NCBI GenBank assembly: GCA_964035545.1
Contig: OZ037765.1
Location: 25,791,504 to 25,855,503, forward strand
Direction: 5' to 3'
From: Bugula neritina
Taxonomy: Eukaryota > Animalia > Bryozoa
DNA: 64,000 nucleotides
Shown: piece by piece, positions 1-29,300 of the stretch
Layout of the letters: each line of letters begins with the position of its first letter
How positions within the stretch are numbered: position 1 is the stretch's first letter
Translations under genes and position numbers: made by a program
The notes under the pieces: model-generated
The model's database searches: none
What the model was told of the DNA's origin: nothing
The model's input: only the letters and a program-made list of their open reading frames with translations

Positions 1-748
1 TACATATACAATCGTTTAGTGTTTACACATGTGTGATATAAGGCTTTGCTACGTCTAAAGTTGAATTACTGCAGCCTACAAGTTCCTTGGTCTTGGGGAC
101 ATTGACAGGAATTACTGAGCTTAGAGCTGGGATATTACTAAGCTACTAGTAAGGGAACTCTATTATACTGGTTGAGGGTTTAAAACTTTAAGGATCAACA
201 ATTCAACAAGAATACCATTATATGTACTACCAACTATTATGACAAACTGTAACTACAACAAGAACTGAAATATAAGCTAGTTTGAAGCCGCTTACTTGTT
301 GTAGTTTTTAAATTTCTTTAGAGGTTTGTTTTATCCAGCCTGTCACAATGATAGATGAGTTTTGTGTGATTTGACCAAAGCAATAGCTCAGTTAGACCAA
401 ACTTGAATATATCATTTTGAATTAACTAAACACATCTAATTATGGATTCATAGTTCATGATGCCATAAATTGAAATTTGTTCAGAAACAGTAGTTTTCAA
501 ATTTCTTAAAAACACAATGTTATTGTTATAGCTTTTTACTCGTTTTCATAATTAAGAAGTTTACTAGAAACTACTAGAAACGAAAAAGAACCAACATCGC
601 TATCAATACTCCTGCAACAGTTTGACATCCGCCAATACTATTATCAATGTTCTCTTAATAAGCAATGTGTATGCAGGGATAGTTGTGGTAATAGTGCCTG
701 TCAGTAAACCGGTCTATGAAAGAGAGAAGAAAGAATTAGGACACACAC

Positions 749-1617
749 CTTGCTGAAGAACTGACTTTGACCAGCTACTAGCACCGTAGAGCCAGTGAGA
801 GACCTCTTTCTCTCTACAGTGTCATCAGTTCTGTTATTTACTTGATTCTAAAAAGTCATATAAATATTTATTCCTTATGAAAATTAATGTTGAAGTTAAT
901 TCTAAACACCACACTATGACAATGACCTACAACTTCAGCTTTCAGCTCTAGTGGGCAAGGTTCTCTTCATTACACAAAGTTAAATTTGAAAATTGATATT
1001 TATCATCATGTGATTGTAAAAGCACAAAGCCTTATGTTACAACTCACAACACATCAATTACAGATACTAGTTTTACAAAACTATGGTTGAAGGGAATATA
1101 ATGAATAGGGAGGTTACTGATTGCTATTTATCAAAGTGCCATGGCTACCACTGACTACATGCTAAGGTATGCAGTTGCTAAACAGCTCTAGTGACAACGT
1201 AGATATCTAACCTGTGCAAAGAAATTACTGTTACCAACACCTGTATACAATGTGCCCGTGTCAGTTAGTCTGCGGATTGGTGTGTCCTCCATATCCTATA
1301 CAATGGTAATCAGCAGGATATTTTACTAGCAATTCAGAACAGCAACAATTCATATAATTTTATATTTACTAGTTTGTAAATAACACAAATACAGCAAAGA
1401 ATATCCATATAATATATAATGAACAATAGGCTGTTCACAGAAAGGCACGTAGTATAACTATTATATAACAATGGACAACATTAGAAAGTATTAAAGTGAG
1501 CCAAGTGGAGTCAAATGAAAAGAAACTGCCCCAAAAGAATGAGATAAACATGACTTACCAGACTTGAGTGGAATGTGTTAAGACTTTGCCTGTTTTGAGT
1601 GCTCGCCATTCTGAATC
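749..1617 (-). other. Possible small exons of an unidentified minus-strand transcript
   Basis: Exon-like blocks with AG/GT borders (about 1560-1617, 1241-1295, 749-813) could join as MASTQNRQSLNTFHSSLDMEDTPIRRLTDTGTLYT...; no family recognised and other frames are stopped. Confidence 0.25.
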
Positions 1618-4600
1618 TAGATAAAACATGATGTGAAGTTGGTCAGTTTTTGAATGATAAGTTTCAGATAAAATCAACAGCAAATATTATAAATATTTAT
1701 TTAATACCTGACATTTACCTGTTTATACTAATAGGTATGTTTTGTTCACTGGTTAAAACAGGATGACTGAGTTACCTTTTCTAATTATAAATGCGTTGAA
1801 TATAATTTTATCCACACTAGTTGAATATAGTACTGCAGTATGATTATAGTAATAAATCACCCACTCCAAATATTTCTACTTCAAATGAGAATCAGTTTAG
1901 ATACTATTAGAATGAACCATTCAGGTAGGTATTATAATAGATTGCAAAATGTATTGAATGCTGGCGGATATCTTAGTCTATTCAAAACGATAATCTTTTA
2001 AAACTCCTAACAAGCATCATTCATGCGCCACATAATTGATAGGCTACGACTGATGATAATATTGTGATGATTTTACCAATAACTAAAAGAAATATTATTT
2101 AAGAATAAACAAAAGATAATTAGAAAGCATATAGTACTAATATACAGTCATCTTATATACTAGTAAGCAGGTATCTTGGAAAAAACTGTTGAAGGAACAA
2201 TATAAAGTAAGTTAGAGAGGTTTTTACCAACCATGTGCATTCAACTTAGGGAGAAGTTTGAGAAACAGAGTGTAGACCAACAATCAGGAAAACTAACTTA
2301 AAACTCATTGTAAAATATATGTTTCAAATTTAGGCCACAGGTGGCCACTGCCATATAAACCTTTGACTTAAATGTCTATGGTAGTGGAGAATTAGCCACT
2401 AAAACCTTACTTTTAAATATTATTTTTAAATATTAGTACAGTAAAGTAAAAATTATATAATAAATTTTAAACAAAGATTTTAAAACAATCTAAATTTGCT
2501 AAGCCTGATGTTGATTGAAGAGAAGTGTTCCGACATATTATAGAAATCAAATAGTTATCATAGGAAAAACAACACTATATTCACTTTGAAACTCCGATAG
2601 CAGAAAGATGCACAACTGTTAAGTGACTTTACATACATAGAAATAGATTTCAGACACCAAACCGAACATTTCATTTTTATCAACATGTTAATAGCCAATA
2701 TAATTTCATGATATTCAAAGCATGTGCATTTCAGTGACAAGAACAAGTGTTGTGCTATACTGTCTGCACTTCAGATCAAAGTTTTGTGCTATCAATGTTG
2801 ACTATTTAGTGGAATATTAGCATGCATCATAACTAATAGCCAATATTAACTAGATCTTGGCACAATTTTAATGTAAACTAAAACCATGCCCACAAGTGCA
2901 ACATCTTTATCTTGGTAACACACCCATCATTAGCTACTCCTACATTTCTCAAAGTAAATTCAACAGATTGGGACAGAGTTTTACACCAACTTTCAGCAAT
3001 CTAAGTCAATATTAGATAAATTGATTCAAGTTTGGCAATAATGTGAGTTGATGTGCAAGAAGATAATTATAATGTTTATTGCCATTTAGATATTTGCATA
3101 ATTTTAATGAATTTGGCAAGTAGTTCCAAACATTTAATAACCAGTTTATACATAACAAAAGAGAAAAACAATACCTCTACTTCTAGCTTTAGCCATTTTA
3201 AGTTTACAGCAATAGTATGAGTATATTAGCTAACAGTTGATAAATAATATTAAAATAACTACCAGCCTCATAATGTTGGTCATGATACTCGTACTCACTA
3301 CTGTGAAAAATGCAAGCTAATATTAATAGCAATACCAAATTTTCCAACAGACTGAGCCACTGAGTCAGACATGCACAAATATAAATGTAAAAACTGCTTG
3401 AAGTTGATAAAACTGAATACAATGTCAAAGTTGTAATGTATAATTTGTATTATAATTATTTATAATATTATTAACACTTGACTCACTTGAATATCAATTA
3501 ACAAATAATCAACAATTGTTATTACTCGTATTATCAATCATCATCATTATGATTATAATAACTATTAGTACTATAGTAGTACTGATACTGGTAGTCATAG
3601 TGATTTGGCTACATTCAAAATTTTATACTATAATCATTATTATTTATTTTTAATTTAATTTTATGCTCATACTTATACTTATAGTAATAGTTATACTTAT
3701 TAATATTACTATTAGTTACAACTTGTAAATAAAAAAATTAGTTTAAACTTGAAAATATAAATTGCTACTAATATTACATATTATAATTAAATTTAATACA
3801 GTATAATAATATTTATATTAATAATAAACCATTAGCATTATGATTACGGTTAGTGTTACCAATACCTGAGCCTGAGGCTGAAAGTGAACTTCACTGTGAA
3901 GTTGACGTTGTTGTAGTGAATATTGCAAAATGAAAAAGGTTATATACAGGAAGCGGATAAATTATAACTGAAGCATTTATAATCCTAGTATCAGGCTCAG
4001 TCGTTGCTAATTGCATTAGAATAAAACCATTACTGATTACTGATAAAAACAATTACAGAGCTTTACACATGACTAAAATAGGAAGTACTGTTTCACACAT
4101 TCCACAACAACCGAGTGTTTAAATATAGAACTGCAGAGTTGTCTCCCATATTACCAAGTACAGAGTACAAGTAAAATTACGCAATGCTAATTACCATGAG
4201 CAAATAACTACTAATCATGATGTTATTTTTATAAAAAATTTAAATAAAAAGCACCCATGCAACAATAACTCCAATGAAGCCTTTTAACCCGAAAAATATA
4301 AGTAAAAAGGTAAGTAAGGTAATAACTGATACAAATCAGAGTTGTCTTTCGCGTTGAGAGCGTTCCGTTTATACTTGATCTCCAGAGATAAATACAAATT
4401 ACGAAGTATTGAAATGTTAACATTAATATAGGTGAAAGGCTCACACATGTGGATAAATTGCTGATATCAGGTGTGCTGCTAATGCTTAGTACTAGTAGTA
4501 GTACTAAATGTACCAGTACTAATAAATGTAACTAATAGTTATAACTGAGTTATAACATAATCAACATAGTGATTGTTAATGTAGTTTACTTAAACCGTAA

Positions 4601-4669
4601 TGCTAATATTAACATTTAATGGTAATTCTAAAAGTGTGCAAGTGACTCTGGGTACTGTAAGTGTAGTAG

Positions 4670-4823
4670 ACGTAGTACTACTACTAGCCCTAGGGGCTAG
4701 GGGTAGTACTACTACTACTAGTACTACTAGTAGTAGTAGTAATACTAATAGTACTACTACTAGTAGTACTACTACTGCTACTACTACTAGTACTACTAAT
4801 ATTACTAGCCCTAGGGGCTAGGG
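4670..4823. repeat. (ACT/AGT)n tract bracketed by a 21-bp near-palindromic direct repeat
   Basis: TACTAGCCCTAGGGGCTAGGG at 4682-4702 and 4803-4823. Confidence 0.85.
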
Positions 4824-7501
4824 CATATCTAGTCTTTCAGTGACTATTCTGTATTCACAGTTAATGTTATTAACAATAACTTTAAGTCGGTGTGAGGGTA
4901 ACTAGTGGTATAACTATAACATTAAGTTTAACTATTGTCATTGTCTATTACTATTAGTATTACTATTAGTATTAGTGTATGTCAGTAAGTGTAAGACTGT
5001 GAGTACGATTTTTTACTATTTAGATTTAGTTTATAGTTATCACTTAAAATTTTAGTTTTACTTTGACTTTTACTTTTAGCAATGCTAATACTAATAAAGT
5101 TAGACCATAGTCATAATGATAGTGAATAGAATTAGAAGTACTGATAGTGATAGGGATACAGTTTGAGTATGTGACCTGGTGATAATATTAGTTGTATTAC
5201 TATTACTGTTACTGTTAGTATTACATATATTCATATTGTTAGTTGTTCATTAGATTTAGTTCTACTTAGTTGTTTTGTTATACTTATTTATTTATTATTA
5301 AGATTATAATTTAAATTATTTTTAATTTTATATTTTATTAAATTAGTTTTTAACTTAAATTTTATTATAATTATTTATTTATTTAAATATAAGTTTTAAC
5401 TATAAATAGAATCATAATGAATATGATAATGATGCTCATGAGTAACAATGATAATCATAATCATGATGATCATTGCTTATAGTTATTTCATTATATTTAT
5501 TAGTTATACTAATAGTAATAGCCTACTGTACTACTGATACTCAAAATTACTAATAGTAATAGTAAAACTATAAGTAAATGTAGTACTGTAAGTAAAACTA
5601 TTACTTATAATTATACTTGAACAATCGCGCTGATACTCACTCTCAGCCTCAGGCTAATATTTTTAAACATCAACAGAACCACATTGGTATTGTAATACTA
5701 AATGTTATCAGTCATGTCTACACTGAAAGTGGAAGATGTTTTACCACAGCTGAATAGCCTTAGGTTTTTTTCCATAGGCATATACAATACAAAATAGTTA
5801 CTTTAACTGAATAATTTACTGACCTAAGAACTGTCTAGATTTTAAATCAAATAGTTTAATAATTCTTTTTCTATGCTTGTCAAGTATGAAAAAAATCAAT
5901 AATGACAGTGATATTAATTATCTGCTTAATATATTGACTATTATATTTATAAAACTCCGTAACTGGCTGTTTGGTCATTCTAAAATTTTAGCACACCCTG
6001 AAAATATCAAATAATTATCATTTATCACCCAGTCAACTCACATAAAAAGCATATCTAATTAAGCAGTATGGTGTTGTTTCAGGTTTGCTACTGTGTCTGG
6101 ATCACTTAAAATGTGATTGACTTTATCTATCAGCCAACTTGGCAACAGGTTCATTTAGTTTATTAACTATCGAATGGTACTCTGGAAATATAATGGGAAA
6201 AATAGAAATTATATAAACTGCATTAGACCACAGGAAGGTTTTAGATAATATAAGTTACATCAAAATCAAAGTAGTTGAGCATCATCATTATAGGTAATGT
6301 ATAAATATACATAGTGACTCAAGCTATTGTAAGTAACAATGTAGATCAAAAGGTTAGAGAAGCATTATGAGAATAGTATAAATTTAAGCAAGATGACATT
6401 AGCAATTGTAGAATGTATATATAAACTGTAGGTAAAATGACATTATATTAATCCAAATGAGACTTACAAAATTGATGCACATGTAATATATCCTTTGTCA
6501 TCCAACATGCCAAACCAGTGGTCTAGATCCAGAGTATAAAATATTAGAGTATAAAGTTGTGTTTTTGTATACTATAGTAGCAGATGTAGTAAGCCTTCAG
6601 TTAAAAGAGGGAAGTTAAAAATGTTCTTTTGAGGCTGCTTGATCTGAACACATTGACCTGTGCTGTGCTAGGGACATTGAATTATCGTAACAGCACTGCT
6701 AGCTAAGAATAGCTTTTGATGTAATGTAGTAATAAAGCAAGAAATTAAGTTTGCTATGTATTAGTAAGTAGTATGATAATGAATTAGTATAGTGTACTTT
6801 AAAAAGCTACAACAATTGGTGGCATACCAATACAAGTATATTGCAGTAATATTCATTGTTTTTTTTATTATTTTTACACTATTTAATATAAGAAATATTT
6901 TCTAAAATTGTTTAATCTATTAAATACTGAACTCAATGACAGATATCCTAACATGATATTAAGCGAAAAAGTTTTTAATCTTATTATGTAAAGTTGCATG
7001 TTTTTTTCACTTTGTTGCACTTACTTTCTTTCTACAAACTTGAATAATTTTTGCATACAATCATATTATATATGATCCTATGTAAAAAAAACTAGAAAAT
7101 TAAAATTTTTACTCTGATATGGTGTTGCTACGATTTAGGCATGAAATAATTTCATCAGTTTAAACTCAATTTTTAGTTTCAAATACTTTGAATTAAAATA
7201 AAAAGCTGATGTTTTACTTATTTGTAATTAAGCTGCATTTCCAAATATATTTTTAATTTACTGGTGTGCAGTTGAATGTGTAAAAATTATATATATTAGT
7301 AATAGACCTCCTTACAAAAATTAAATTCATTACCAATTGTGAAAAATACTGATTCACAATTTCTTTTTGAATCCAATCTTTTGCAAACGAATAAGTTTTA
7401 CCTATTCTAGTTAATATTGTCAGCCAGTTTGAGCATGAGTTATTTCAATTTTTTAACGAAGTATGTGTTGAATTTATTATATGTATTTATGTTTTGAAAG
7501 C

Positions 7502-15738
<8,237 letters not shown>

Positions 15739-17345
15739 CAAAAAAAAACAATTAAAATAAGGAGATTTTAAAGGAAACATAAATCTGTTTATCTAAATAA
15801 AATACTAGAGAAAGTTTTGCTTCATTCTGGCACTTAATATAAAATAAACAGGTATACAAAATACAAGTGGAGAAAAGTGTTAAAACTTGGGTGTGAATGC
15901 ATATTTTGTAAAAAGTAAAATTAATTCTTTTTGTTTCACATTCAGTTTTATATTTAATTTGATACACAATATGCAGTATTGTTATATACTTTTTTTCTGA
16001 AAATATGATTTTTCTGAAATTATATTCTTGCTATTTGCTGCAAGTTGGCATTAAAAATGGAGCACTACTAGAGTGTAAGTATTTAATGTGGGGCCTTAAA
16101 TACTAATAGAGATCAGTTTCAACAAGATATTAATAATTTTATTTAGCTACCCAAGTGACACTTATTAAAATAAATTCTTTATCTGTTCACTTAGCTTCAT
16201 GGGACCCTTACAACCAATTTTTTCACAGGTTATTGCAAAGTGCTGTACATACAGTTTCTCAATGGTCAAAGCTGTAGGTGAATTGTGGCATTTAAGTTCT
16301 GCATGCCCTATTTTCATAAAACTCCTTTCAGATAGCTCCAACATTAGAGCACTGCATTGGTTTATGAAAAGGACTCTGCTTACTTGTATGTTGGATGCTA
16401 ATACTTGGGGTTTTCATTTCACAAAACCCAGATTTCTGATTAGTGCCTTGACTTTGCAAATCATTGATTTTATTTCAGGTATTCACTAATTCCTCAGTCT
16501 ACCTAAAACTAAACACTACTACTTGCTACTATGCAATCCTGCAAATATTACAATGCAGGCACATGAGCATATATAAAATTGGATATGATTGGTGGCACCT
16601 AGTTGACTCACGAATGCTATTGGTACATTCATCAAATATTAGATTTGCACTACTAGCTCCCATCTTAACTCTTCTAGCAATAATTATGCTTGGTATACAA
16701 GTATGCTGAGTTTTGTAGTTTCAACTTTGAAGATTTTGCTAATATTGCTTTTAGATAATACACAGTAGAGTTATTGGACATGCAACGTATGTATAGGGCA
16801 AGTTATGTAGCATGCAACTAAAGTATAGTTGTTCAACAAAGCAACACAAACATATAAAGTGCTTTTTTTGCTTTGTGGTTTCATATTTTCTAAATAATAA
16901 TATATCATAGAAAAATTTTAAATTGTATGATATCAATATTATATTGACTTAGTTTGCATAGCCTGACTCACAGTCAGATTATTTAGGTGTCAAAATTGTT
17001 TCAATAAGCTATTCCAAAAAAGTACAACCAACAAATAATAAATATTATACTGTAAGCCATGACTATATTGGTAAGCTGCAACAAATATGGCATTTCCCTT
17101 AGAACACGATCACAGATAATTTTACAAGACAAGCTTGCTTTTCTATCAAATAAACCATATGAAAACTATAAAATGAAATTTTCAAAATATATGTACCTAT
17201 AGATAAAGACATAAATAAATACAATGATTACAGACTTGCTAAATTGTCAAAAAATAACTGTTGTGGGACATAATATAAAACAGCAAGTGTATTATACAAG
17301 AAAACACACAAATGACTGTTCATTCCATCTGAACTGAACACATCT

Positions 17346-20300
17346 CTATAATACTGTAAGAGGTTTGGCTGACTTAGATTGACTGATACTCGTGTAAGCA
17401 GCATGTATCTTGAAATGCAGACGAGATTCCAGAGCGTAACCTTTATAGTTGCTTCTACAAGCAAAGTAGGATTTATTTTTTATGTTATATATTTAAAAAT
17501 TATACAGGGAATTGGGTTTGTTATTCAATGATATATAATCCAAATACATGTTAATTTGAATTATTAAATAAAAACGAGGACCTATAAGGTGGTTAAGTAT
17601 AAACATTACTAATACTTTAGAAATTCACTAAACTTTTTGTGACATACTTGGCACAGTCAAGGAGGTCAGAAGCTTCAGCATACTCCCCCATTTTCACTCT
17701 AAGCAGTGCCTGTTCCACAGTAGCCCATGGTGCAAGATAGGTATCAAATTTCAAGTCTTTAGCACTGCAAAAGCAGATATTTTTGTATAAATAAGTGCAA
17801 TAAGCTGGATGCCAATAACCTTTACCCTATAAACGTAAGCAATAAATCATAAACCTATTTGTAAACTTTTAATGGTTTGGTCTACCTGATAAAACTGTCA
17901 GAAAGCGCTAAGTGATTCAATCATCAAACCTATCAATATTATAATTTTGCAAAACTCAGGAAAAGTGATTTCGTTAATATATTTTAGAAATTATGGGGTA
18001 CCTATAGGTTCAAGACAATTATTTTTAGCAACTTCTAGCTCCAAATACATAACCACATAGAGTAGGTCAGCTAACTATAGAGTGCAGCTTTAGACTATTC
18101 TAATGATCAACTTTTCCTTCACTTTGGAAACATTTCAGTACATAAATATTGAGACTAACTGAGAAATGATTTCCTGATAGCACATGTCCGCCTGAAAGAG
18201 TTGTCCTTTCATTGCCAAACAAACGCCTTTGAGGAGGAGAGCGAGAGAGTAATTGTCAAAGTAGTACTTGAGCTGATCTACAACCATGGAATATGTCATA
18301 TTATAGCTGTCAAAGCTACTAGAGTAATACTTAGTATTATTATATTTAAAACAGCCCCATCATAGTTTATTAAAGGTAAATAAAGACGCAAGTGATACAA
18401 GTTTCACAATCAAAACTGCTACTCCTAGCAATACCTGCAGTTGGTAGGAAGTACGGTGAAACAAACCTTTTTTGGAGATTAGTTTGTTTATGGAGTCTTC
18501 AATAAGCTGGGATATTGGATCTAACAGCTCCATATTTTTACCTATTATAGAGAAGCCATTCCACACGTATATCATTTCCTAAAAGAAATATAGAGCTAAC
18601 TATACAGCCATACCAATAAAGTCTTATTTGGTTCGTTATTACCACCATTAAAATACCAATGCAATAAAGAAACGCTGATATTTATAAACACCTATGAGTA
18701 ATGTTCATGGAGAAATCTTGGAAATTAAAAAAAGACTAGAAGTAAAACTGAAATTTAAACACCAAAAAACTATAATAGCTACAGATATGCCAACCTTCCA
18801 AATGCTAACAGCTAGACTTATGCATGACCGTATTTTGACCTTTCCTCCTTTCAGATAATTTTTTTTAAAATAATAACTCTGATGACGCAACAAAAGTTTT
18901 GACAGAGCACTTTGCCAAGTATGTGATTATTCTATTCCCTCTTTGTATGGCATAATTTGAAAATTTTCAAATTTAACCAACTTCTTTTTAAAATAATTTT
19001 CTTCTTACTACAAAATGCATTACTTGTCGTTGTCCACTTACATTATATGATAAATTGCAATTAGATTTTGGAAGCATAAATTTATAGCACTTCAAATCTA
19101 ATCTAATGCCTACGACATAATGTAATTTTATGCAGCAAGTAAAATAAAATAAGTTTTCCTGTTTTGTTCAACAAAATATTAAGCAACCAAAACTAAAACT
19201 TTGATCACATGATTTACAATCAACATACTTTATTGAAAAAATTCAACAGAAATTGGGAGTAATTTGGCGCATTAACAATGACACCGTAAAAGCACTCGAT
19301 ATCTATGAAGGGGTTCCTGAAGTTAGAAAACTTGACTCACCAATGCTGCCAGATTGAGCTGACAATTCTGAGCCTTATACAGCTTCACCTTTTTCAATGC
19401 GAACTTCTCTATAGGTAAAGATTTACCTGCAAATCGTTGTATGAGTTCAGGTACTTGGCTAAAAACAAAACATGAAGAGATAATAATATGAGCTTTACGA
19501 CAGCTCACTGTGCAGAGATTAGGAAATCTGAATATATGGACAACAACTAATGCCCATCCACCTGTAATTAGCAGTTGTATTATTGTAAACTTCTTCAGTG
19601 TATTATAAGGCAATTAGTATTCCTGCTACTTTATACCAATAAGTGAGCAGTTGTTAAGTTATAAAGTCTGTCGCATGTTGAATGATTCAACAAAAACTGC
19701 ATGCGGTAACATATTACAGCAACACATTATCATGAATAATGTTTCCAACAAGTGAATTAAGTACACTTTAAAAACATATAATTACTTAACTAAAAGCAAG
19801 AACTAAAAACTATACCTGTAAAGATCTTTCACCAATGACTCAGTCTGCTCATCTTCACCACACAAAGAGAGAAAGGAACCCTTCAGATACGTGTATGTAG
19901 CTCTGCTCCATTTGTTCTCAGTGGCCAACTTTTCAGCATACTTCATGGCGAGAAGCCAGTCACACTTGTAAGCATAGCACCACATAAGTTCCCAGTAACA
20001 TATATGGTGAAACTGCCTCCATTCAGACTGACTTTCAACAGACCGCAAGAGGAGGGCCAGAGCTTTATCAATGTCTCCTTTGATTTGTTCAATTCTTCCA
20101 TGGAAAAACAGAAATAGTGCACTCTGAAACATACAAAGAGTAAATTATTTCAACAACTGGTGTGATGACTTATAAACTACACTTGAAAGCAAAATATACT
20201 ACTAGTTTATTTGTATATAGGTTTAGAGTTACGCTAGTTATACACTATTTTGATCGTTACAACAAATGAATGAAAAACAATAGTGAGAGTTTACATCTTT

Positions 20301-23300
20301 CAAAAGAATAGAGTAAGTTCAAAAGTATCAGCTAGACAGTCATTCTGCTTCAAATGACAACAATACAACATAACTACAACTAAAGAATACACACCATCAT
20401 TTTAAATGAATAGAGATTTTCTAATATCAAATATTAGGCTACCTGAGGGTAGAGCTGCAGACATGGTTGGATAACTTCCTCTGAAGCAGTTATATCCCCT
20501 TCCCCGGTACCTGCGTAGTAAGAGCAGATAAAATATACATGTATGTATGTATAACTTTCCAATGTCTTTTGTCTCCTCACAATTCAAAGAGTCAGCTTAC
20601 AATGCTATATATTTACACGACATTACAAAAGGAAAAAATCTCTACACAACCAATCTCATACGGGTATTTATGGCCTCTCCCTGTGTCAATACGATAAAAT
20701 ATTACTTATCAGTTTAGGGAGTGTTGGCTAGTAGTTGTTTTGCTAGTATCAACTTCTATCAAGTGATACACCATTTACACACTATTACAGAAACCCTCTA
20801 AACCCAGAGAACATATTATTGTTGATTGTTATTTTTGAAAAAGACTTTCCTAGTGAATTGTAAGGATATACCAAGGTTCATAGTTTATATTCATTGTTTT
20901 CTTGCCAGCCACTTTTGTTTTAGTAATGTGTTTGTAGATTACACAAACTACGTTAATAGTAAGTAGTCCATCAGAAAAATAGGAAAAGTAAAGGTTTCAA
21001 AATATTAAATAGCAAAATATTGAAACTATTTATTTCAATTCACAAAATTTACTTTTTTTATACAACTAAAAAAATTCTAATAAGATTTTTGAAGACACTT
21101 CTTTCACCACTAGTTTTTCATTATTAATTGCAGCAAATATTTGACTATGACTGTGAGCTTTTCAAAAAGTTGAGAATATATTCTCATCTCCACAAACTTG
21201 TTAAAATGATGAATATTTAAATTTCAACTTTGAGTGTTTATTTGAATAGTCAACCAATTTTAGAAACTTGAATAGAACTGTTGTGGTTAAAAGCACGGTT
21301 GTAAATGAATGCTATTTCAGTGTGGTTTACTATTTGTAGAAAATGGAACTTAGGACTGAAAGTCAACGAAAGGAGTTCAAGGCTAAGCTAACAAAACAAA
21401 TTATAGCTTCAGGTACTAAAATACAACTACAGCTTCATGAATATGACAAGAGTCAACCTTTACATGACATATTAAGTAGATGGAATAATCCACAGGGACG
21501 AAACTTCCTTATGTTGGCAATTATTCACGAGAAAAAAGAAGCAGTGTATGATATTCTCGATATTTTAAATCTTGGTGCTACTGATTATGGATTTTGGACG
21601 AAAGAAGACTTTGTAAAATTCCTATGTATGACAGACAATGACCGTAACAATGTGTTGCAGCTGGCGCTGCTTTATCAAATCAATAAACAAAGTGATGGAT
21701 TGCTTCAAACCCTGCTAGTTCATGTTGAAGATGGCAGGAGCAAATTGGCAGAGCTAGTCGATAATGAGAACAATGCTAGACAGAAGTCAATAGATATTGC
21801 TTTTAGAGGACGGTGGGATAAGGATGTAATCAATTCTTTATTAGATAAAAGTAATGACTATGACAGAAAAGGTATGATGAGAGCCATAATATTTTACAAT
21901 GATGTGTATGAGAACGAGAGAAATGCACGTTCCCTAGATGAAGCACTCTTTAGCAGAGGGTTTTATGTAGAACATTGGACGCATAAACAGTGGAATGCAG
22001 ATACCCTTCTTGACAAGTTGACAACAAAATGTAAAGAGGGTATGGATCAATTGTGGGTGGTGGGTCTTACTCATGGCGTATACAAGTATATCTTCGATTC
22101 ATCTAGTAAGAAAATCCTGATTGACGATATAGAACAAAAACTTATAAACACCTCTGATGGAGGAAAAGATGTAAGAACTTTTCACATTTACATTTTCATT
22201 AAAAAATCTATAAACTTGACACATCAGTGAAAGCACGGCAGAGAAATAATTTTATTTTAGATTATATTTTAGACACTATTTACTTAAAGTAAATTTAGCA
22301 ATAATTCAAGATGAAGTTTGAAAAAATACAATTTGATTTTCTTTATTCAATTATTCTTCAAAACAAAGCAGTCCAAATAACCAGCAGATTACACATAATT
22401 GCATGAGACCCATTGTCAATTTTTGTTAAAATAGATTTAGTTTTGACATCGTGGAACCCAGAAACTAAACTTTTTATTATTACAATATTGACAACTACAG
22501 TTGAATGTTGCAAATAAGAACAGAAAACTTCCAATGCTGATTCTCACAGTTAGAACTTAAATTATTTGCTATAACCCATTGCTTGTTAATTTCAATACTA
22601 TTTCAACCATTTTTTGAAAAGTTTCCACATCTTGATTACCAGTACATGTGTGCTGAGTCACCAGACGGCAAAGTTGGCCTTTTAAAGAGCATTAATGTTG
22701 TTTTGCACGAATAACAAAATGTTATTTTGCATAAATAACATTTTGTTATTTAACATGAATGTTAAAATCGAATAAGACGATTCTTGAAAACAGTAAAAAC
22801 AATGATTTGGGAGTTAGTCCTCTCAATCTGTAAACAAATTATTGCACAAAAAGCTGAGTTTTGAAGTTTCTTGATAAGCTCTACCAAACTAAAACATTCC
22901 TGACAACTTCATACAAAACAATTATTCTACTAGTTTACAGTGACATATTACTACATATTTCAGATAATCATCATTATTGATGCTTGTCAAGAGAATGAAG
23001 AAGAGGAAGGAGAGGAAGGAGAGAGAGGAGAGGAAGGAGAGAGAGGAGAGGAAAAAGAGAGAGGAGAGAGAGTAGAGGAAGGAGAGAGAGGACAGAGAGT
23101 AGAGGAAGGAGAGAGAGGAGAGGGAGGAGAGGAAAGAGAAAGAGGAGAGGAAAAAGAGGGAGGAGAGAGAGGAGAGGAAGGAGAGAGAGGACAGAGAGTA
23201 GAGGAAGGAGAGAGAGGACAGAGAGGAGAGGAAGGAGAGAGAGTAGAGGAAGGAGAGAGAGGACAGAGAGTAGAGGAAGGAGAGAGAGGACAGAGAGTAG

Positions 23301-26300
23301 AGGAAGGAGAGAGAGTAGAGGAAAGAGAGAGAGGACAGAGAGTAGAGGAAGGAGAGAGAGGACAGAGAGTAGAGGAAGGAGAGAGAGGACAGAGAGTAGA
23401 GGAAGGAGAGAGAGTAGAGGAAAGAGAGAGAGTAGAGGAAGGAGAGAGAGAACAGAGAGGAGAGAGAGGACAGAGAGGAGAGGAAGTTGAAAGAGAAAGA
23501 GAAGAGGAAAATGAGGAAGAAAGCCCAGAAAACCTTTCCATAACACCAAATAAAAAGCTAGCAACCCCTTCACAACCCCGAACAGTACATCTTCTCATTA
23601 CAAGTAGCAAAGGCGAACAAGCATGGGGAGAGAATTTCATTACACCTCTTGTTAAACACTTGAATGATGGTGAAACAGATGTATGGACAATTCTCAGAAG
23701 TGCATCAAATGACGCTCAAACATTATCTGCTTCAAAAAAACATGAAAAGAGCACACACACAATCCAGTTTCCAACATCTCTAGAGGAAGGAGACATAACA
23801 TTGCCACCACCAATAGCTCACACACAAAACTGATTTTCTGCCTTCCGTTTGACACAGTCAACTGAACTTATATATCTCAAGTATAAGTGCTACTTGTGCT
23901 TACACTATTGCTAGTTGAGCTAGTGCTAACAACATACTAAATTTATCTTGTGTTCTACTTGTGTTAGATTATAGCTAGCAATATGGTGAGTTTAGTGACT
24001 AAGTAACTGCAAGAGCTTTGAAAGACTCAACACATTCCCTTATCAAACACAGAGTTCTGCTGATCAACTTATTATAAATATGAAGAAAAACAGAAGTAAA
24101 TATGATTTGAAAAGCTGCTATTCCAGAGAACCTGAAGTACACATACAGAAATAAATTTTAAATAGATATAAGCTACACTGCATTGAAAGAATAAAAATTT
24201 TAATCTAAACATTGTTGATGAAGATACATCAAAACATAATGTTATGCTTATACAGGCATTTATTCAAGTTCCTGCTTTATATTAGACATTATGATGACTT
24301 TTAATTTAGTACTATTTATAATTTACTAAATTGTTTAATTATAGAAAAACATAGTATTTATATTGAAATATCATATTTGAAAATAAAAAAGTCTGTATTA
24401 TGACTAGTGAGTTGTGTATTCATTATACTCTTGGATAAAAGCAAAAGTATAAAGATGCAGTGAAAAGAAATTAAAAGTAAAGTCTTAAAAAAAGTAGAAG
24501 CATAATAATTTGATGGTATTTAAATTAAATTACTGTTTGCAATAAGATACAAGTTGATTGTAGATATTTAAACTGCTTAGATTTGATTTAAAAATAATAT
24601 ACTTTTTTTTCCAGCCGTAGAAGTAACAATGCCTGCTAGTTTTACTATAAACTATAGCTTTGTAAAAATTCCACAAGATATCAAACTGTTATTATTACTG
24701 CTTTTAGCACTCATAGTAGTTGAAAATCCCAGTGATGGCTGATTTTGTGATGGTTTATATCTTCCTATTTATTTTTAAGCAATCCCATGTACATCAACAT
24801 AACCAGTGGCATGACATAGGCATTGAACATGAATATGGGCTTGCAGCAAGTTGACACACTACAGTATTCACCTATCACTTGTCTAGTCATGTAGGACATA
24901 CTTGTTAATAAATATCAGTGTGTGGCACTGTTACAGGCAGCTGAATTATTAAAGTAACAACAGAGTTACACTAGCAGCAAATCTCACTGAACCAAAACTT
25001 ATCAAGTTGAGAAAATATGATCTGCTGAATTATTTTGCAAATTATAACATATTTTGTGTGAAAAATTTTTACTGAAAGATGCTTCAACCCAAGCAAAGGT
25101 TTAACCTCGTAACAAACCAAACTCCACATATTTAATTCAGCATTATACTGGTCAGGCTCACTGAGACACTCATGTTAATAGTTTAGCATACTAACTTACA
25201 TATAATGTTAGATTCTATCCTGGAGCATCGTGAGACTTGGATCTGTTTGATTTACTTATTCCGACACCATTTCACAACTTTTGTTCGAAGAAGTCAAATT
25301 CATTTATTCTAAAATTAACTTGCGGATGCTGAAATTCCAAAGACCACTCAGGACTTACCCAATATATAAGTTACCATCGTGTTGTATCCCAGGAGAATCA
25401 AGGAACAGAGCGGACCTCTTAGAGAATGAATTTTATCAGCACCTATTCTCAGCTCACTCAAACCTAAACTCTACAAGCAAACATGCTGTGACTAAATAAT
25501 TCTCATGTACAGTTCAGTTTTGGTCAGCATTTTGTTTAATTCCAATAACTGAAATATAAGTCCAGACAACTAAACACCATTCCACATTCTCTGATCACAT
25601 TTTATTTTAAAAACTACATGAATAATTTCATCAGTTTTTGAACACAGTCACGTCAACTGTTCATCACCCAATGCAGGACATTTAAAAGCAATTGGTGAAT
25701 AAGATTAACTTTTTATTATAAATATCAGGCAAGTATATAGTTGCCATGAGAAACCCCCTGATGGAAGGAGTTTCATTTAAAGCAGGCTAAGGAGCACATG
25801 AGCATTTATGACTGGATGCTTTTTCTACCATCACCAATGACCTTTACTGGGAATGGAACCCATGGCTATGGGCTTACCAAGCCAGCGCTCTAACCTCTAG
25901 ACCACAATTGCTCCCATTGACTTTCTAGTACTATACTGTCATGATAATCTAACTGTTCTGTATAACTATGACCATCAGTGGTAATTAATGGAATAAAACT
26001 CACTCTGTTTCCAGAAAATCCAACAAACTCGAGCAGTTTGAGTACTCTAGCCGGCAGCTGTGAGATCATCTACATAATGACAGCAATAATGAGTTTAGAT
26101 ATACAGCTCTTCACAATAACCAAATAATACAATAAATCAGTAGTAGGGTATACCTGAAACTCTACAGAAAAGAACCATCAGGAACAGTTTGGTGGCCATC
26201 GACGTTTGTAGGCAGACAACTGATACTTTTTTTTATCAATATAACAAACTTTAAACAGGCAACAAAAATGTTAACTAAATATACAATACAATATTATACA

Positions 26301-29300
26301 CTATGCTTTTAAAGAGATATTTAATTATTTTTTTCAATCATCAGCTTTAGTTTAGGAATAAAGAATAATGAATAAGTTTAAACAACAAATTAAAACTTGA
26401 TATAACAACTACCTTGTATATTACAGGCAATAAAACTATGGTACTTTATTCTTTAGCAAAATCAATTGCTTACCAGATTGAAAGCTCCTATTCCCATATT
26501 GACACCACTAGAAAAATGCTCATAATCACTAAGAGTTGCCTTATCTCTACTTTCCGCTATTTTACGGCATTCTCTGAAATACAGCAGAAAGTTACTAGTT
26601 ATTGAAATATTACAGATAGTTGTTTCACTTAAAACCTAGTAGAGCAGTAAAGAAGACAATCTGTACTATAGTACTATAGTACGCATTATATTACATACAA
26701 TAAGCATTATATTACATACAGTGAGCATTATATTACATACAGTGAGCACTATATTACATACAGTAAGCACTATATTACATACAATAAGCATTATATTACA
26801 TACAGTGAGCATTATATTACATACAGTAAGCGCTATATTACATACAATAAGCATTATATTACACACAGTGAACATTATATTGGACCAAGTAGAAAATATA
26901 TAGCTAATTAGTTAAATTGAATTGAAAATGTCAGGCAAGGGTGCACACAGCATATTACATACACATACAATGCAGTGTGCTACTGTTTATACATTAAATA
27001 GTGCTTTATGTGTGGAACTAAATATTATAATATTACAAAAATGGTAACCCATTATTCAGCAGCCAAAATCTTACTGTCACTGCCAATACAGGCATTCCAA
27101 TTCAAATCTTATATTTGCTGCTTTTTACTTCTGTTAATATTTAAAAATTACTATTATATCGCATTGTGTGCATTTCCAAAAAAGCATGCACGTCTGTTAA
27201 CTGGCAATGTAGAATTAGATAAACTGTACGGATGGTTATGTAACACACTAGATTAACTTATATACATTAAAGCTGTGACCAGTGCAAGAACACAACTCCT
27301 GGTGTCAGATCCACTCACTTGTACGACTGGTAACAATGCTTGATCTTGAGGGCTCCTTTGAGGAAACTCATCAGATTCTCATCCTGAACAAAACTCAGGA
27401 CAGCTCTGAGAAGGAGAGTCTCCGCAAACACCAGCTCAGCGTGCACTTCAACTGTTGTAAATAAAATATTTTACTAGCAGTTTACTATGCATTCCTCACC
27501 CAACCTTTCAAAATATTTTAGTTTAAATTCATTTGGAAATTACTGTTAAAAGGCAGATCAAATAAGTATTATATCTCTTGGTGACTAACCCTGTCCTGGA
27601 ACATTACTAAAACATTACAAACATGAGATTTCTATTTAATGTCTAACATGTGCTATAAATACACCTAGTACTCACTTTCAGTGTATGTAGAGTATATAAC
27701 TATGTACTCACTGTCAGTGTATGTAGAGTATATAACTATGTACTCACTGTCAGTGTATGTAGAGTATATAACTATGTACTCACTGTCAGTGTATGTAGAG
27801 TATATAACTATGTACTCACTGTCAGTGTATGTAGAGTATATAACTATGTACTCACTGTCAGTGTATGTACAGTATATAACTATGTACTCACTGTCAGTAT
27901 ACGTAGAGTATATAACTATGTACTCACTGTCAGTGTATGTAGAGTATAACTATGTACTCACTGTCAGTGTATGTAGAGTCTATAACTATGTACTCACTGT
28001 CAGTGTATGTAGAGTATATAACTATGTACTCACTGTCAGTGTACGTAGAGTATATAACTATGTACTCACTGTCAGTATACGTAGAGTATATAACTATGTA
28101 CTTTCAGTGTATGTAGAGTATATAACTATGTACTCACTGTCAGTGTATGTAGAGTATATAACTATGTACTCACTGTCAGTGTATGTAGAGTATATAACTA
28201 TGTACTCACTGTCAGTGTATGTAGAGTCTATAACTATGTACTCACTGTCAGTGTATGTACAGTATATAACTATGTACTCACTGTCAGTATACGTAGAGTA
28301 TATAACTATGTACTCACTGTCAGTGTATGTAGAGTATAACTATGTACTCACTGTCAGTGTATGTAGAGTATATAACTATGTACTCACTGTCAGTGTATGT
28401 AGAGTATATAACTATGTACTCACTGTCAGTGTACGTAGAGTATATAACTATGTACTCACTGTCAGTATACGTAGAGTATATAACTATGTACTTTCAGTAT
28501 ACGTAGAGTATATAACTATGTACTCACTGTCAGTGTATGTAGAGTATATAACTATGTACTCACTGTCAGTGTATGTAGAGTATATAACTATGTACTCACT
28601 GTCAGTGTATGTAGAGTCTATAACTATGTACTCACTGTCAGTGTATGTAGAGTATATAACTATGTACTCACTGTCAGTGTATGTAGAGTATATAACTATG
28701 TACTCACTGTCAGTGTATGTAGAGTATATAACTATGTACTCACTGTCAGTGTATGTAGAGTATATAACTATGTACTCACTGTCAGTATACGTAGAGTATA
28801 TAACTATGTACTCACTGTCAGTGTATGTAGAGTATATAACTATGTACTCACTGTCAGTGTATGTAGAGTATATAACTATGTACTCACTGTCAGTGTATGT
28901 AGAGTAGTCAATCTTGTGTGAGATCTGCTTTAGAGTATCATACATGGTGTGCTTCTTCCTCAGAGAATGAGCCAAGTTTATGGACCTCTTAGTAGACTGA
29001 ATAGCAGCTTCTATGTCCGGCTGTTGAATGTTGGATATATTATGAGATGAATGAGCAAAGATTTATAATAATGAAACACAAACATGTTTATAATATTATT
29101 ACAAAGAAATATGAGAAAATATGTTGATATAACAAGAAAATAAATAGCAAGTTTGAACATAAAATGGTTTACATTTACTAGATTTGTTCAGCTCAGCAAA
29201 GTTCAATTATTCTTCAAGCTAAAAGTATCTAAGCTTTTTCCATGTCCTCAAAAGACACACAATAAGGGTTTTCATATTAAAAGTAATGTATGATAAATCT

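Follow-up and report, generated by a model that had tools for sequence, protein, structure and literature searches.

We describe a gene of the bryozoan Bugula neritina that is predicted to encode, in a single chain, an ankyrin-like domain followed by a very divergent caspase-fold protease. The gene lies on the plus strand of a 64,000-nucleotide (nt) stretch of DNA, hereafter the window (C1:25791504-25855503 of a 216-Mb assembly with a genome G+C of about 31%), inside an intron of a TTC39 gene that runs on the opposite strand. Our preferred reading, to which we assign a probability of about 0.6, is that this nested two-exon gene encodes a 565-amino-acid (aa) ankyrin plus caspase-fold cysteine protease that is not specific for aspartate and works as a one-chain sensor-protease. 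The structural side of this reading is supported by the analyses below, while the functional side is a plausible proposal.

A two-exon gene with a predicted phase-0 junction

Two open reading frames (ORFs) on the plus strand, 21343-22230 (295 aa) and 22940-23833 (297 aa), can be joined by a GT-AG intron. The donor GT (22171-22172) stands straight after the codon GAT of exon 1, and the acceptor AG (22962-22963) is preceded by a pyrimidine-rich tract. As position 22964, the first of exon 2, is in frame with the second ORF, the intron is in phase 0, and the predicted product counts 565 aa, 276 codons coming from exon 1 and 289 from exon 2. The parts of the gene are the following:

21343-22170, plus strand: exon 1, codons 1-276, an ORF from a conserved ATG (MEL...) to the donor, 51-65% identical to six bryozoan-type proteins and with the donor position kept
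21343-21873, plus strand: ankyrin-repeat-like N-terminal domain, aa 1-177, about four helix pairs, from an AlphaFold2 model and its structural matches
21874-22170, plus strand: first part of the caspase large-subunit-like region, with the catalytic His244 in LTHG, from the family-profile alignment to the SHG of caspase-6, -3 and -8
22171-22963, plus strand: phase-0 GT-AG intron of 793 nt, read from the sequence and found at the same junction in an annotated B. neritina protein
22964-23833, plus strand: exon 2 including the stop codon (coding 22964-23830), an ORF opening with the strand that bears Cys284 in IIDACQ, aligned to IQACxG
23002-23486, plus strand: GA-rich in-frame tandem repeat (Tandem Repeats Finder periods of 27 and 99 nt), an E/G/R-rich linker at the junction of the large and small subunits
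23525-23830, plus strand: small-subunit-like (p10-like) block, ending in ...GDITLPPPIAHTQN, 53% identical to the C-terminus of the annotated protein and profile-aligned to caspase-8 p10
24150-24155, plus strand: first AATAAA past the stop, a candidate poly(A) signal by pattern only

The donor position is common to six related loci, and the acceptor is also present in the B. neritina contig L004 (VXIV02000608.1) and in the metagenome contig L005. The annotated B. neritina protein EB796_004502, referred to here as P0004, is spliced at the same junction (...EKE / VILIIDACQ). The putative catalytic residues, His244 (22072-22074, in LTHG) and Cys284 (22985-22987, in IIDACQ), are separated by 40 residues, compared with 42-48 in caspases. 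Cys284 is followed by a linker of 179 aa made of E, G, R, V and Q (77 E, 37 G and 36 R), which measures about 14-55 aa in the relatives and therefore ranges from 14 to 179 aa across the family. The C-terminal block after the linker is unique sequence of 102 aa; it aligns by profile with the helices and the last strand of caspase-8 p10, and in the P0004 model it lies within residues 188-406, the segment with the caspase fold. Among the sequencing runs holding the locus, one was near-complete (of unspecified kind) and one, a "metagenomic RNA-Seq" run, contained 9% of its words.

Judged from its sequence, this is an intact two-exon gene, selectively maintained, with a predicted splice junction. 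The first-pass annotation of this DNA had joined the two ORFs by a canonical phase-0 intron into a protein of 565 aa, placed LTHG and IIDACQ at caspase-like spacing and recognized a p10-like block after the repeat; both the sequence and the junction of P0004 agree with that model.

The C-terminal domain is modelled as a caspase fold

We looked at the C-terminal domain with sequence profiles and with structure prediction. P0004 matched the Pfam family Peptidase_C14 (PF00656) with 46.1 bits against a cut-off of 21.4 (E = 6.5e-12, residues 193-386). A profile of the C-terminal half of the family, run against the PDB, found caspases only, namely ancestral caspase-6 (9.5e-6), caspase-8 (8.6e-5) and caspase-2, and every match with E < 0.02 was a caspase. 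The window exons also gave a Collagen match in Pfam, which we discarded as spurious since it comes from the E/G/R repeat.

The AlphaFold model of P0004 had a mean predicted local distance difference test score (pLDDT) of 74, with 85-94 in the repeat domain, 70-86 in the protease domain and a disordered linker. Its top Foldseek matches were caspase-11, CED-3 and caspases-3, -7, -8, -6 and -1, with E of 3e-8 and weaker. An exhaustive structural scan with the same model gave caspase-8 (Z 18.6, 193 residues, root-mean-square deviation (rmsd) 3.3), CED-3 (Z 18.5), caspase-9 (Z 18.1) and c-FLIP (Z 17.4), with eight caspase or caspase-like structures at Z 17.1-18.6; MALT1 (Z 15.7), metacaspases (Z 15.6 and 14.2) and legumain (Z 13.9) ranked lower. 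These models support a C-terminal domain with a caspase fold, closest to animal caspases, complete but very divergent, as the earlier proposal of a divergent caspase-fold protease had it.

The catalytic dyad is kept and the specificity pocket appears altered

The family profile aligns LTHG with SHG and IIDAC with IQAC of caspase-6, -3 and -8. The His-Gly pair was present in 9/9 versions of exon 1, including those of the distant relatives P0010 and P0012, and IIDACQ was identical in all six versions of exon 2 that were seen. The dyad, already described as kept, is therefore invariant among the versions. By contrast, none of them carries the caspase signature QACxG: the window has DACQE, the relatives have DACQV, DACQE or DACQG, and the Gln two residues ahead of the catalytic Cys is an Asp in every version, as had been noticed for the window.

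Concerning the two arginines that form the S1 pocket of caspases, Arg260 of caspase-8 (Arg179 in caspase-1 numbering) aligned with Val188, within a beta1-alpha1 loop shortened by about 15 residues. Arg413 of caspase-8 (Arg341) stands opposite the Gly of SSKGEQ; this loop lacks about 7 residues relative to its caspase counterpart and was modelled with low pLDDT in P0004. The alignment supports the view that no arginine corresponds to either S1 arginine, so that the absence of both the p20 and the p10 arginine claimed in the first-pass annotation still stands. One detail of it has to be revised: AWG had been equated with the SWR motif, but it aligns with the caspase motif (D/E)G(S/T)W, which follows SWR, and the SWR position itself lies in the SSKGEQ loop.

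In MALT1 and the metacaspases, an Asp two residues before the catalytic Cys lines an acidic S1 pocket that receives Arg or Lys. Considering that the bryozoan family has an Asp at the same position, we infer a P1 preference that is no longer Asp and is possibly basic. The linker contains a motif, PNR or PNK, whose basic residue is conserved; together with the 36 linker arginines, this motif provides candidate sites of self-processing.

An ankyrin-like N-terminal domain

Residues 1-177 of the window protein were modelled by AlphaFold2 with a pLDDT of 84.6 and a predicted template modelling score of 0.82. The best 50 structural matches of these residues were almost entirely ankyrin-repeat proteins or DARPin fusions, with IkB-alpha at the top (Z 13.3, rmsd 2.7, 131 aligned residues) and Yar1 at Z 13.2. 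Foldseek, run on the same residues, also returned nearly all ankyrin proteins or DARPins, but with E of only about 6e-3. Since Foldseek agrees in kind but with weak E values, "ankyrin-like" is the right wording for this modelled domain of about four repeats, and the ankyrin-like prodomain proposed earlier is supported, at the level of the fold, by the window's own residues. In the relatives, Pfam gave an Ank_2 match to P0004 at E = 0.19, and P0002 reached 26.3 bits against a cut-off of 27.3, owing to extra repeats.

The gene evolves rapidly with a preserved reading frame

We compared the available versions of exon 1 by the pairwise Nei-Gojobori method. The synonymous divergence (dS) was about 0.2-0.4 and the ratio of nonsynonymous to synonymous divergence (dN/dS) was 0.6-1.4, the p20 part having lower values (0.5-0.7) than the ankyrin part (about 1). 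Exon 1 is open in all of seven versions with a nucleotide divergence of about 22-28% each, and the indels that separate them all have lengths divisible by three. When neutral substitution was simulated at the observed divergence, fewer than 4 in 10,000 trials yielded 276 stop-free codons, whichever pair was considered. The start, the stop, the splice sites and the catalytic motifs are also conserved. Homology and the neutral simulation rule out chance ORFs.

We then aligned the window with contig L004 (1950-5530), exon 2 being measured on its tail with the repeat linker omitted. The nucleotide identities along the locus were:

20600-21342, upstream: 91.5%, with 96-98% in the last 200 nt
exon 1: 75.9% in the ankyrin part and 74.4% in the p20 part
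intron: 75.6%
23498-23830, tail of exon 2: 75.3%
23834-24500, 3' flank: 90%, with 92-96% just past the stop

Divergence is therefore about three times higher across the body of the gene from start to stop, intron included, where identity is 69-80%. The change is abrupt at both ends: identity falls from 96-98% to about 80% on passing the start codon and recovers from 69% to 92-96% on passing the stop codon. A second pair, formed by two B. neritina contigs, showed 80% identity in the exons, 86% in the intron and 91-93% in the outer flanks. The versions are also mosaic: between L005 and L007, identity is 94.5% in the first 640 nt and drops to 74.5% beyond. Four versions were recovered from a single metagenome sample, and one B. 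neritina assembly contains two. The versions may represent either old alleles under balancing selection or paralogues exchanging sequence by conversion.

Considering the divergence steps at start and stop, the greater divergence of exons than of the intron in the second pair, the mosaic versions and their co-occurrence, a bolder and tentative reading can be put forward, although we hold it to be rather unlikely. The gene would be a hyper-polymorphic recognition locus in which balancing or diversifying selection maintains old, recombining lineages of alleles, each coding in one chain for an ankyrin sensor and a non-Asp (perhaps Arg/Lys) caspase-fold protease, and it would be a candidate determinant of pathogen recognition or of colony self/non-self.

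A family restricted to Bugula-like bryozoans

A search with exon 1 matched six proteins. One of them is P0004, a protein of 413 aa that is the positional orthologue and whose UniRef name is automatic only; the remaining matches are ORF calls from metagenomes that run into the intron at the same donor. An exhaustive search of 1.84 billion representative proteins with the family profile gave eight matches, all from bryozoan-like DNA and none from a flatworm or an annelid. Six of the eight are pieces of the same family. P0010 and P0012, the remaining pair, are only distantly related; their repeat regions are longer, they show THG or AHG, and they read through at the corresponding intron position. 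Searches with exon 1, P0004, P0010, P0012 and the family profile found no second copy in the window's genome, and the profile gave a single weak match to a p20 exon (E = 0.003) among four other caspase or ankyrin-caspase loci of this genome. Literature searches found no paper on this ankyrin-caspase family. On sequence grounds the family is restricted to Bugula-like bryozoans. The first-pass annotation had called the gene lineage-specific and had asked for a paralogue search; the first point agrees with these counts, and the second returned this locus only.

Some members depart from the common organization. In P0002 (L005 600-1100, residues ~170-330), a 12-residue unit, NNWNxDIINYLL, is repeated in frame about 12 times between the ankyrin and caspase parts, a second and independent in-frame repeat expansion in the family. 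P0011 carries an internal deletion. At the level of the whole genome, we counted at least 179 exon-level Peptidase_C14 matches, many of them clustered (e.g., C1:32.8-35.5 Mb, C6:2.5-6.3 Mb and C7:7.58-7.71 Mb), which amounts to a very large caspase expansion.

Nesting inside TTC39

Exons of the host gene were located by matches to the Pfam model Iml2-TPR_39 (PF10300):

19833-20228, minus strand: TTC39 exon, model positions 226-359, E = 8e-30
25354-25467, minus strand: TTC39 exon across the intron, model positions 203-239, a weak match in register with the stronger exons
25998-26081 and 27312-27461, minus strand: stronger TTC39 exons

As TTC39 exons lie on the minus strand on both sides, the gene is nested and antisense, as had been proposed. 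The same nested layout was found in the B. neritina contigs L004 and L020 (VXIV02002543.1), and one metagenome contig terminates in a TTC39 exon; because TTC39 surrounds or adjoins them too, we consider the related loci as positional homologues.

Several other observations concern the host gene. In L004, positions 741-13563 contain an equivalent of window 19703-26881 followed by an equivalent of window 15741-20618, a layout that reflects either a tandem duplication of the unit made of TTC39 and the nested gene or a haplotig join in a draft assembly. A 72-codon ORF at window 25281-25499 (plus strand) is conserved in L005, and it appears to be merely the antisense reading of the conserved TTC39 exon 25354-25467. 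A small minisatellite lies in the TTC39 intron at window 26650-26900, with more copies in L004 (7394-7915). Finally, a second TTC39-like gene was found about 4.6 Mb away (C1:30380979-30385326, plus strand), and no nested relative was found there.

Proposed function and alternative explanations

According to our preferred reading, the protein, which looks cytosolic, would carry a four-repeat ankyrin-like domain in the place of a CARD or DED prodomain. The fast-evolving ankyrin domain would bind a ligand or a partner and so govern dimerization or activation. The caspase-fold part would be an active cysteine protease with a P1 residue other than aspartate, a basic residue being the most likely alternative, and PN[R/K] would be a candidate self-cleavage site within an acidic linker that may be free to vary in length (14 to 179 aa) between the two halves of the protease. 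Such a one-chain sensor-protease might act in immunity, cell death or self/non-self recognition. This functional reading fits with the fast evolution of a gene whose frame is preserved.

A number of results weigh against this reading. The caspase fold was modelled on P0004, which is 57% identical to the window protein, and not on the joined protein of the window, to which it carries over by an identity of 53-58%. Pfam, which had been suggested as a check, was positive for Peptidase_C14 with P0004, but the window exons taken singly gave no C14 match and stayed below threshold for Ank, so that this check came out favorably for the relative only. The S1 mapping comes from a profile alignment with weak ends and not from coordinates, and the shortened 341-loop, modelled with low pLDDT, could mean that the substrate groove does not form. 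A dN/dS near 1 is also expected from relaxed constraint. A word search of protein databases did not find a transcript-derived protein spanning the junction. Moreover, the second B. neritina copy (EB796_016950, L020 8900-11600) is interrupted by several frameshifts and represents a pseudogene or, given that its metagenome counterpart in L005 is intact at 96% identity, possibly an error of assembly.

Among the alternatives, we considered that the protein may be a regulatory pseudo-protease, in which the fold and the dyad are kept while the groove no longer binds substrate, and which would pair like c-FLIP with the true caspases of the genome and dock through its ankyrin part. In its favor, the protease-like domain of c-FLIP-L ranks high among the structural matches (Z 17.4), neither S1 arginine has a counterpart, the 341-loop is shortened by about 7 residues, and the C14 matches of the genome would offer potential partners. 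However, known pseudo-caspases usually lack the Cys or the His, whereas here both of them and the oxyanion Gly are invariant at only 50-60% identity, and the p20 part is more constrained than the ankyrin part. We regard a pseudo-protease as unlikely, though the likeliest of the alternatives. An ordinary Asp-specific caspase with an unusual prodomain, whose loss of the S1 site would be an artefact of alignment, appears improbable. It would agree with the fact that the nearest folds and PDB sequences are all Asp-specific animal caspases, and the alignment is weak at the first arginine; nevertheless, the change from Q to D falls in the best-aligned motif and is invariant, both arginine loops are shorter and not simply substituted, and, given the general chemistry of caspases, an Asp beside the pocket would repel a P1 Asp.

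It is similarly improbable, and slightly more so, that the two ORFs are a decaying or unexpressed relic, an orphan pair drifting neutrally in which a high dN/dS reflects lost function. The dN/dS close to 1 in the ankyrin part would be expected in that case, and degenerate copies do exist (P0011 with its deletion and L020 with its frameshifts). On the other hand, seven versions keep exon 1 open with in-frame indels only (P < 0.0004 each under neutrality), start, stop, splice sites and catalytic motifs are conserved, and so are the promoter-proximal 200 nt (96-98%). As for membership in the metacaspase/paracaspase branch (C14B) instead of the caspases proper, the DxC in place of QAC is as in MALT1 and metacaspases, and MALT1 (Z 15.7) and metacaspase-4 (Z 15.6) are found by structure. 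Caspases, however, score about 2-3 Z units above them, with eight structures at Z 17.1-18.6, PDB profile matches with E < 0.02 are all caspases, and neither the Ig and death domains of paracaspases nor the p10 or Ca-binding features of metacaspases are present. This identity is very improbable and, considering the structural rank and the sequence matches, we rejected it.

Comparison with known systems

Caspases with an ankyrin prodomain (ANK caspases) have been described in parasitic flatworms, first in Schistosoma, and in the annelid Alitta virens; they too were proposed to be initiator-like enzymes recruited via their repeats, and no bryozoan was sampled (PMC11463336, Genome Biol Evol 2024). 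The novelty that the first-pass annotation saw in the architecture must therefore be toned down. Like the ANK caspases, the bryozoan protein comes from a lophotrochozoan and, at the level of the fold, has an ankyrin prodomain that immediately precedes the caspase domain. It differs in its short array (about four repeats), in the lack of a sequence link detectable with the family profile and in a caspase domain that appears to have diverged much further (DAC, no S1 arginines). In the feature search of the ESM Atlas, the nearest look-alikes were Ank plus Peptidase_C14 clusters from arthropods and bacteria, which suggests that this architecture recurs. The ankyrin-caspase design is thus known, and what is distinctive here is a short, single-copy, nested gene with an altered pocket motif.

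With the animal caspases of C14A (caspase-8, CED-3, caspase-3/6/7/9), the protein shares the best folds (Z 17-18.6), the sole sequence matches in the PDB, the order of His strand, Cys strand, linker and small-subunit helices, and the His-Gly and Cys. Unlike them, it has DACQE and not QACxG, no counterpart of Arg179 or Arg341, shorter loops (by ~15 and ~7 residues), no CARD or DED, and a hyper-acidic linker of up to 179 aa. It shares with MALT1 and metacaspases the Asp two residues before the catalytic Cys, and type II metacaspases also have long or variable linkers, but structural scores are lower and there are neither shared accessory domains nor a match at the sequence level. Like c-FLIP-L, it combines a caspase fold (Z 17.4) with an altered substrate site. 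c-FLIP is without the catalytic cysteine, whereas both catalytic residues are present in every version of the bryozoan family.

Significance

Caspases are defined by cleavage after aspartate and by death-fold prodomains. The bryozoan protein is predicted to have a scaffold closest to that of true animal caspases, on which the specificity pocket has apparently been rebuilt and the prodomain swapped for a fast-evolving ankyrin module. If active, it would indicate that a preference for Asp can be abandoned on the animal caspase scaffold, as in para- and metacaspases, and it would provide a compact, single-copy model (at most 565 aa) for the poorly understood ankyrin-caspase design. To our knowledge, no recognition genes have been identified in this colonial bryozoan, and the sharp island of divergence over the gene body makes the locus a candidate for immunity or allorecognition in a colonial animal. 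The gene is of interest chiefly for this divergence island and for the shift of specificity predicted for a scaffold of the true caspase type.

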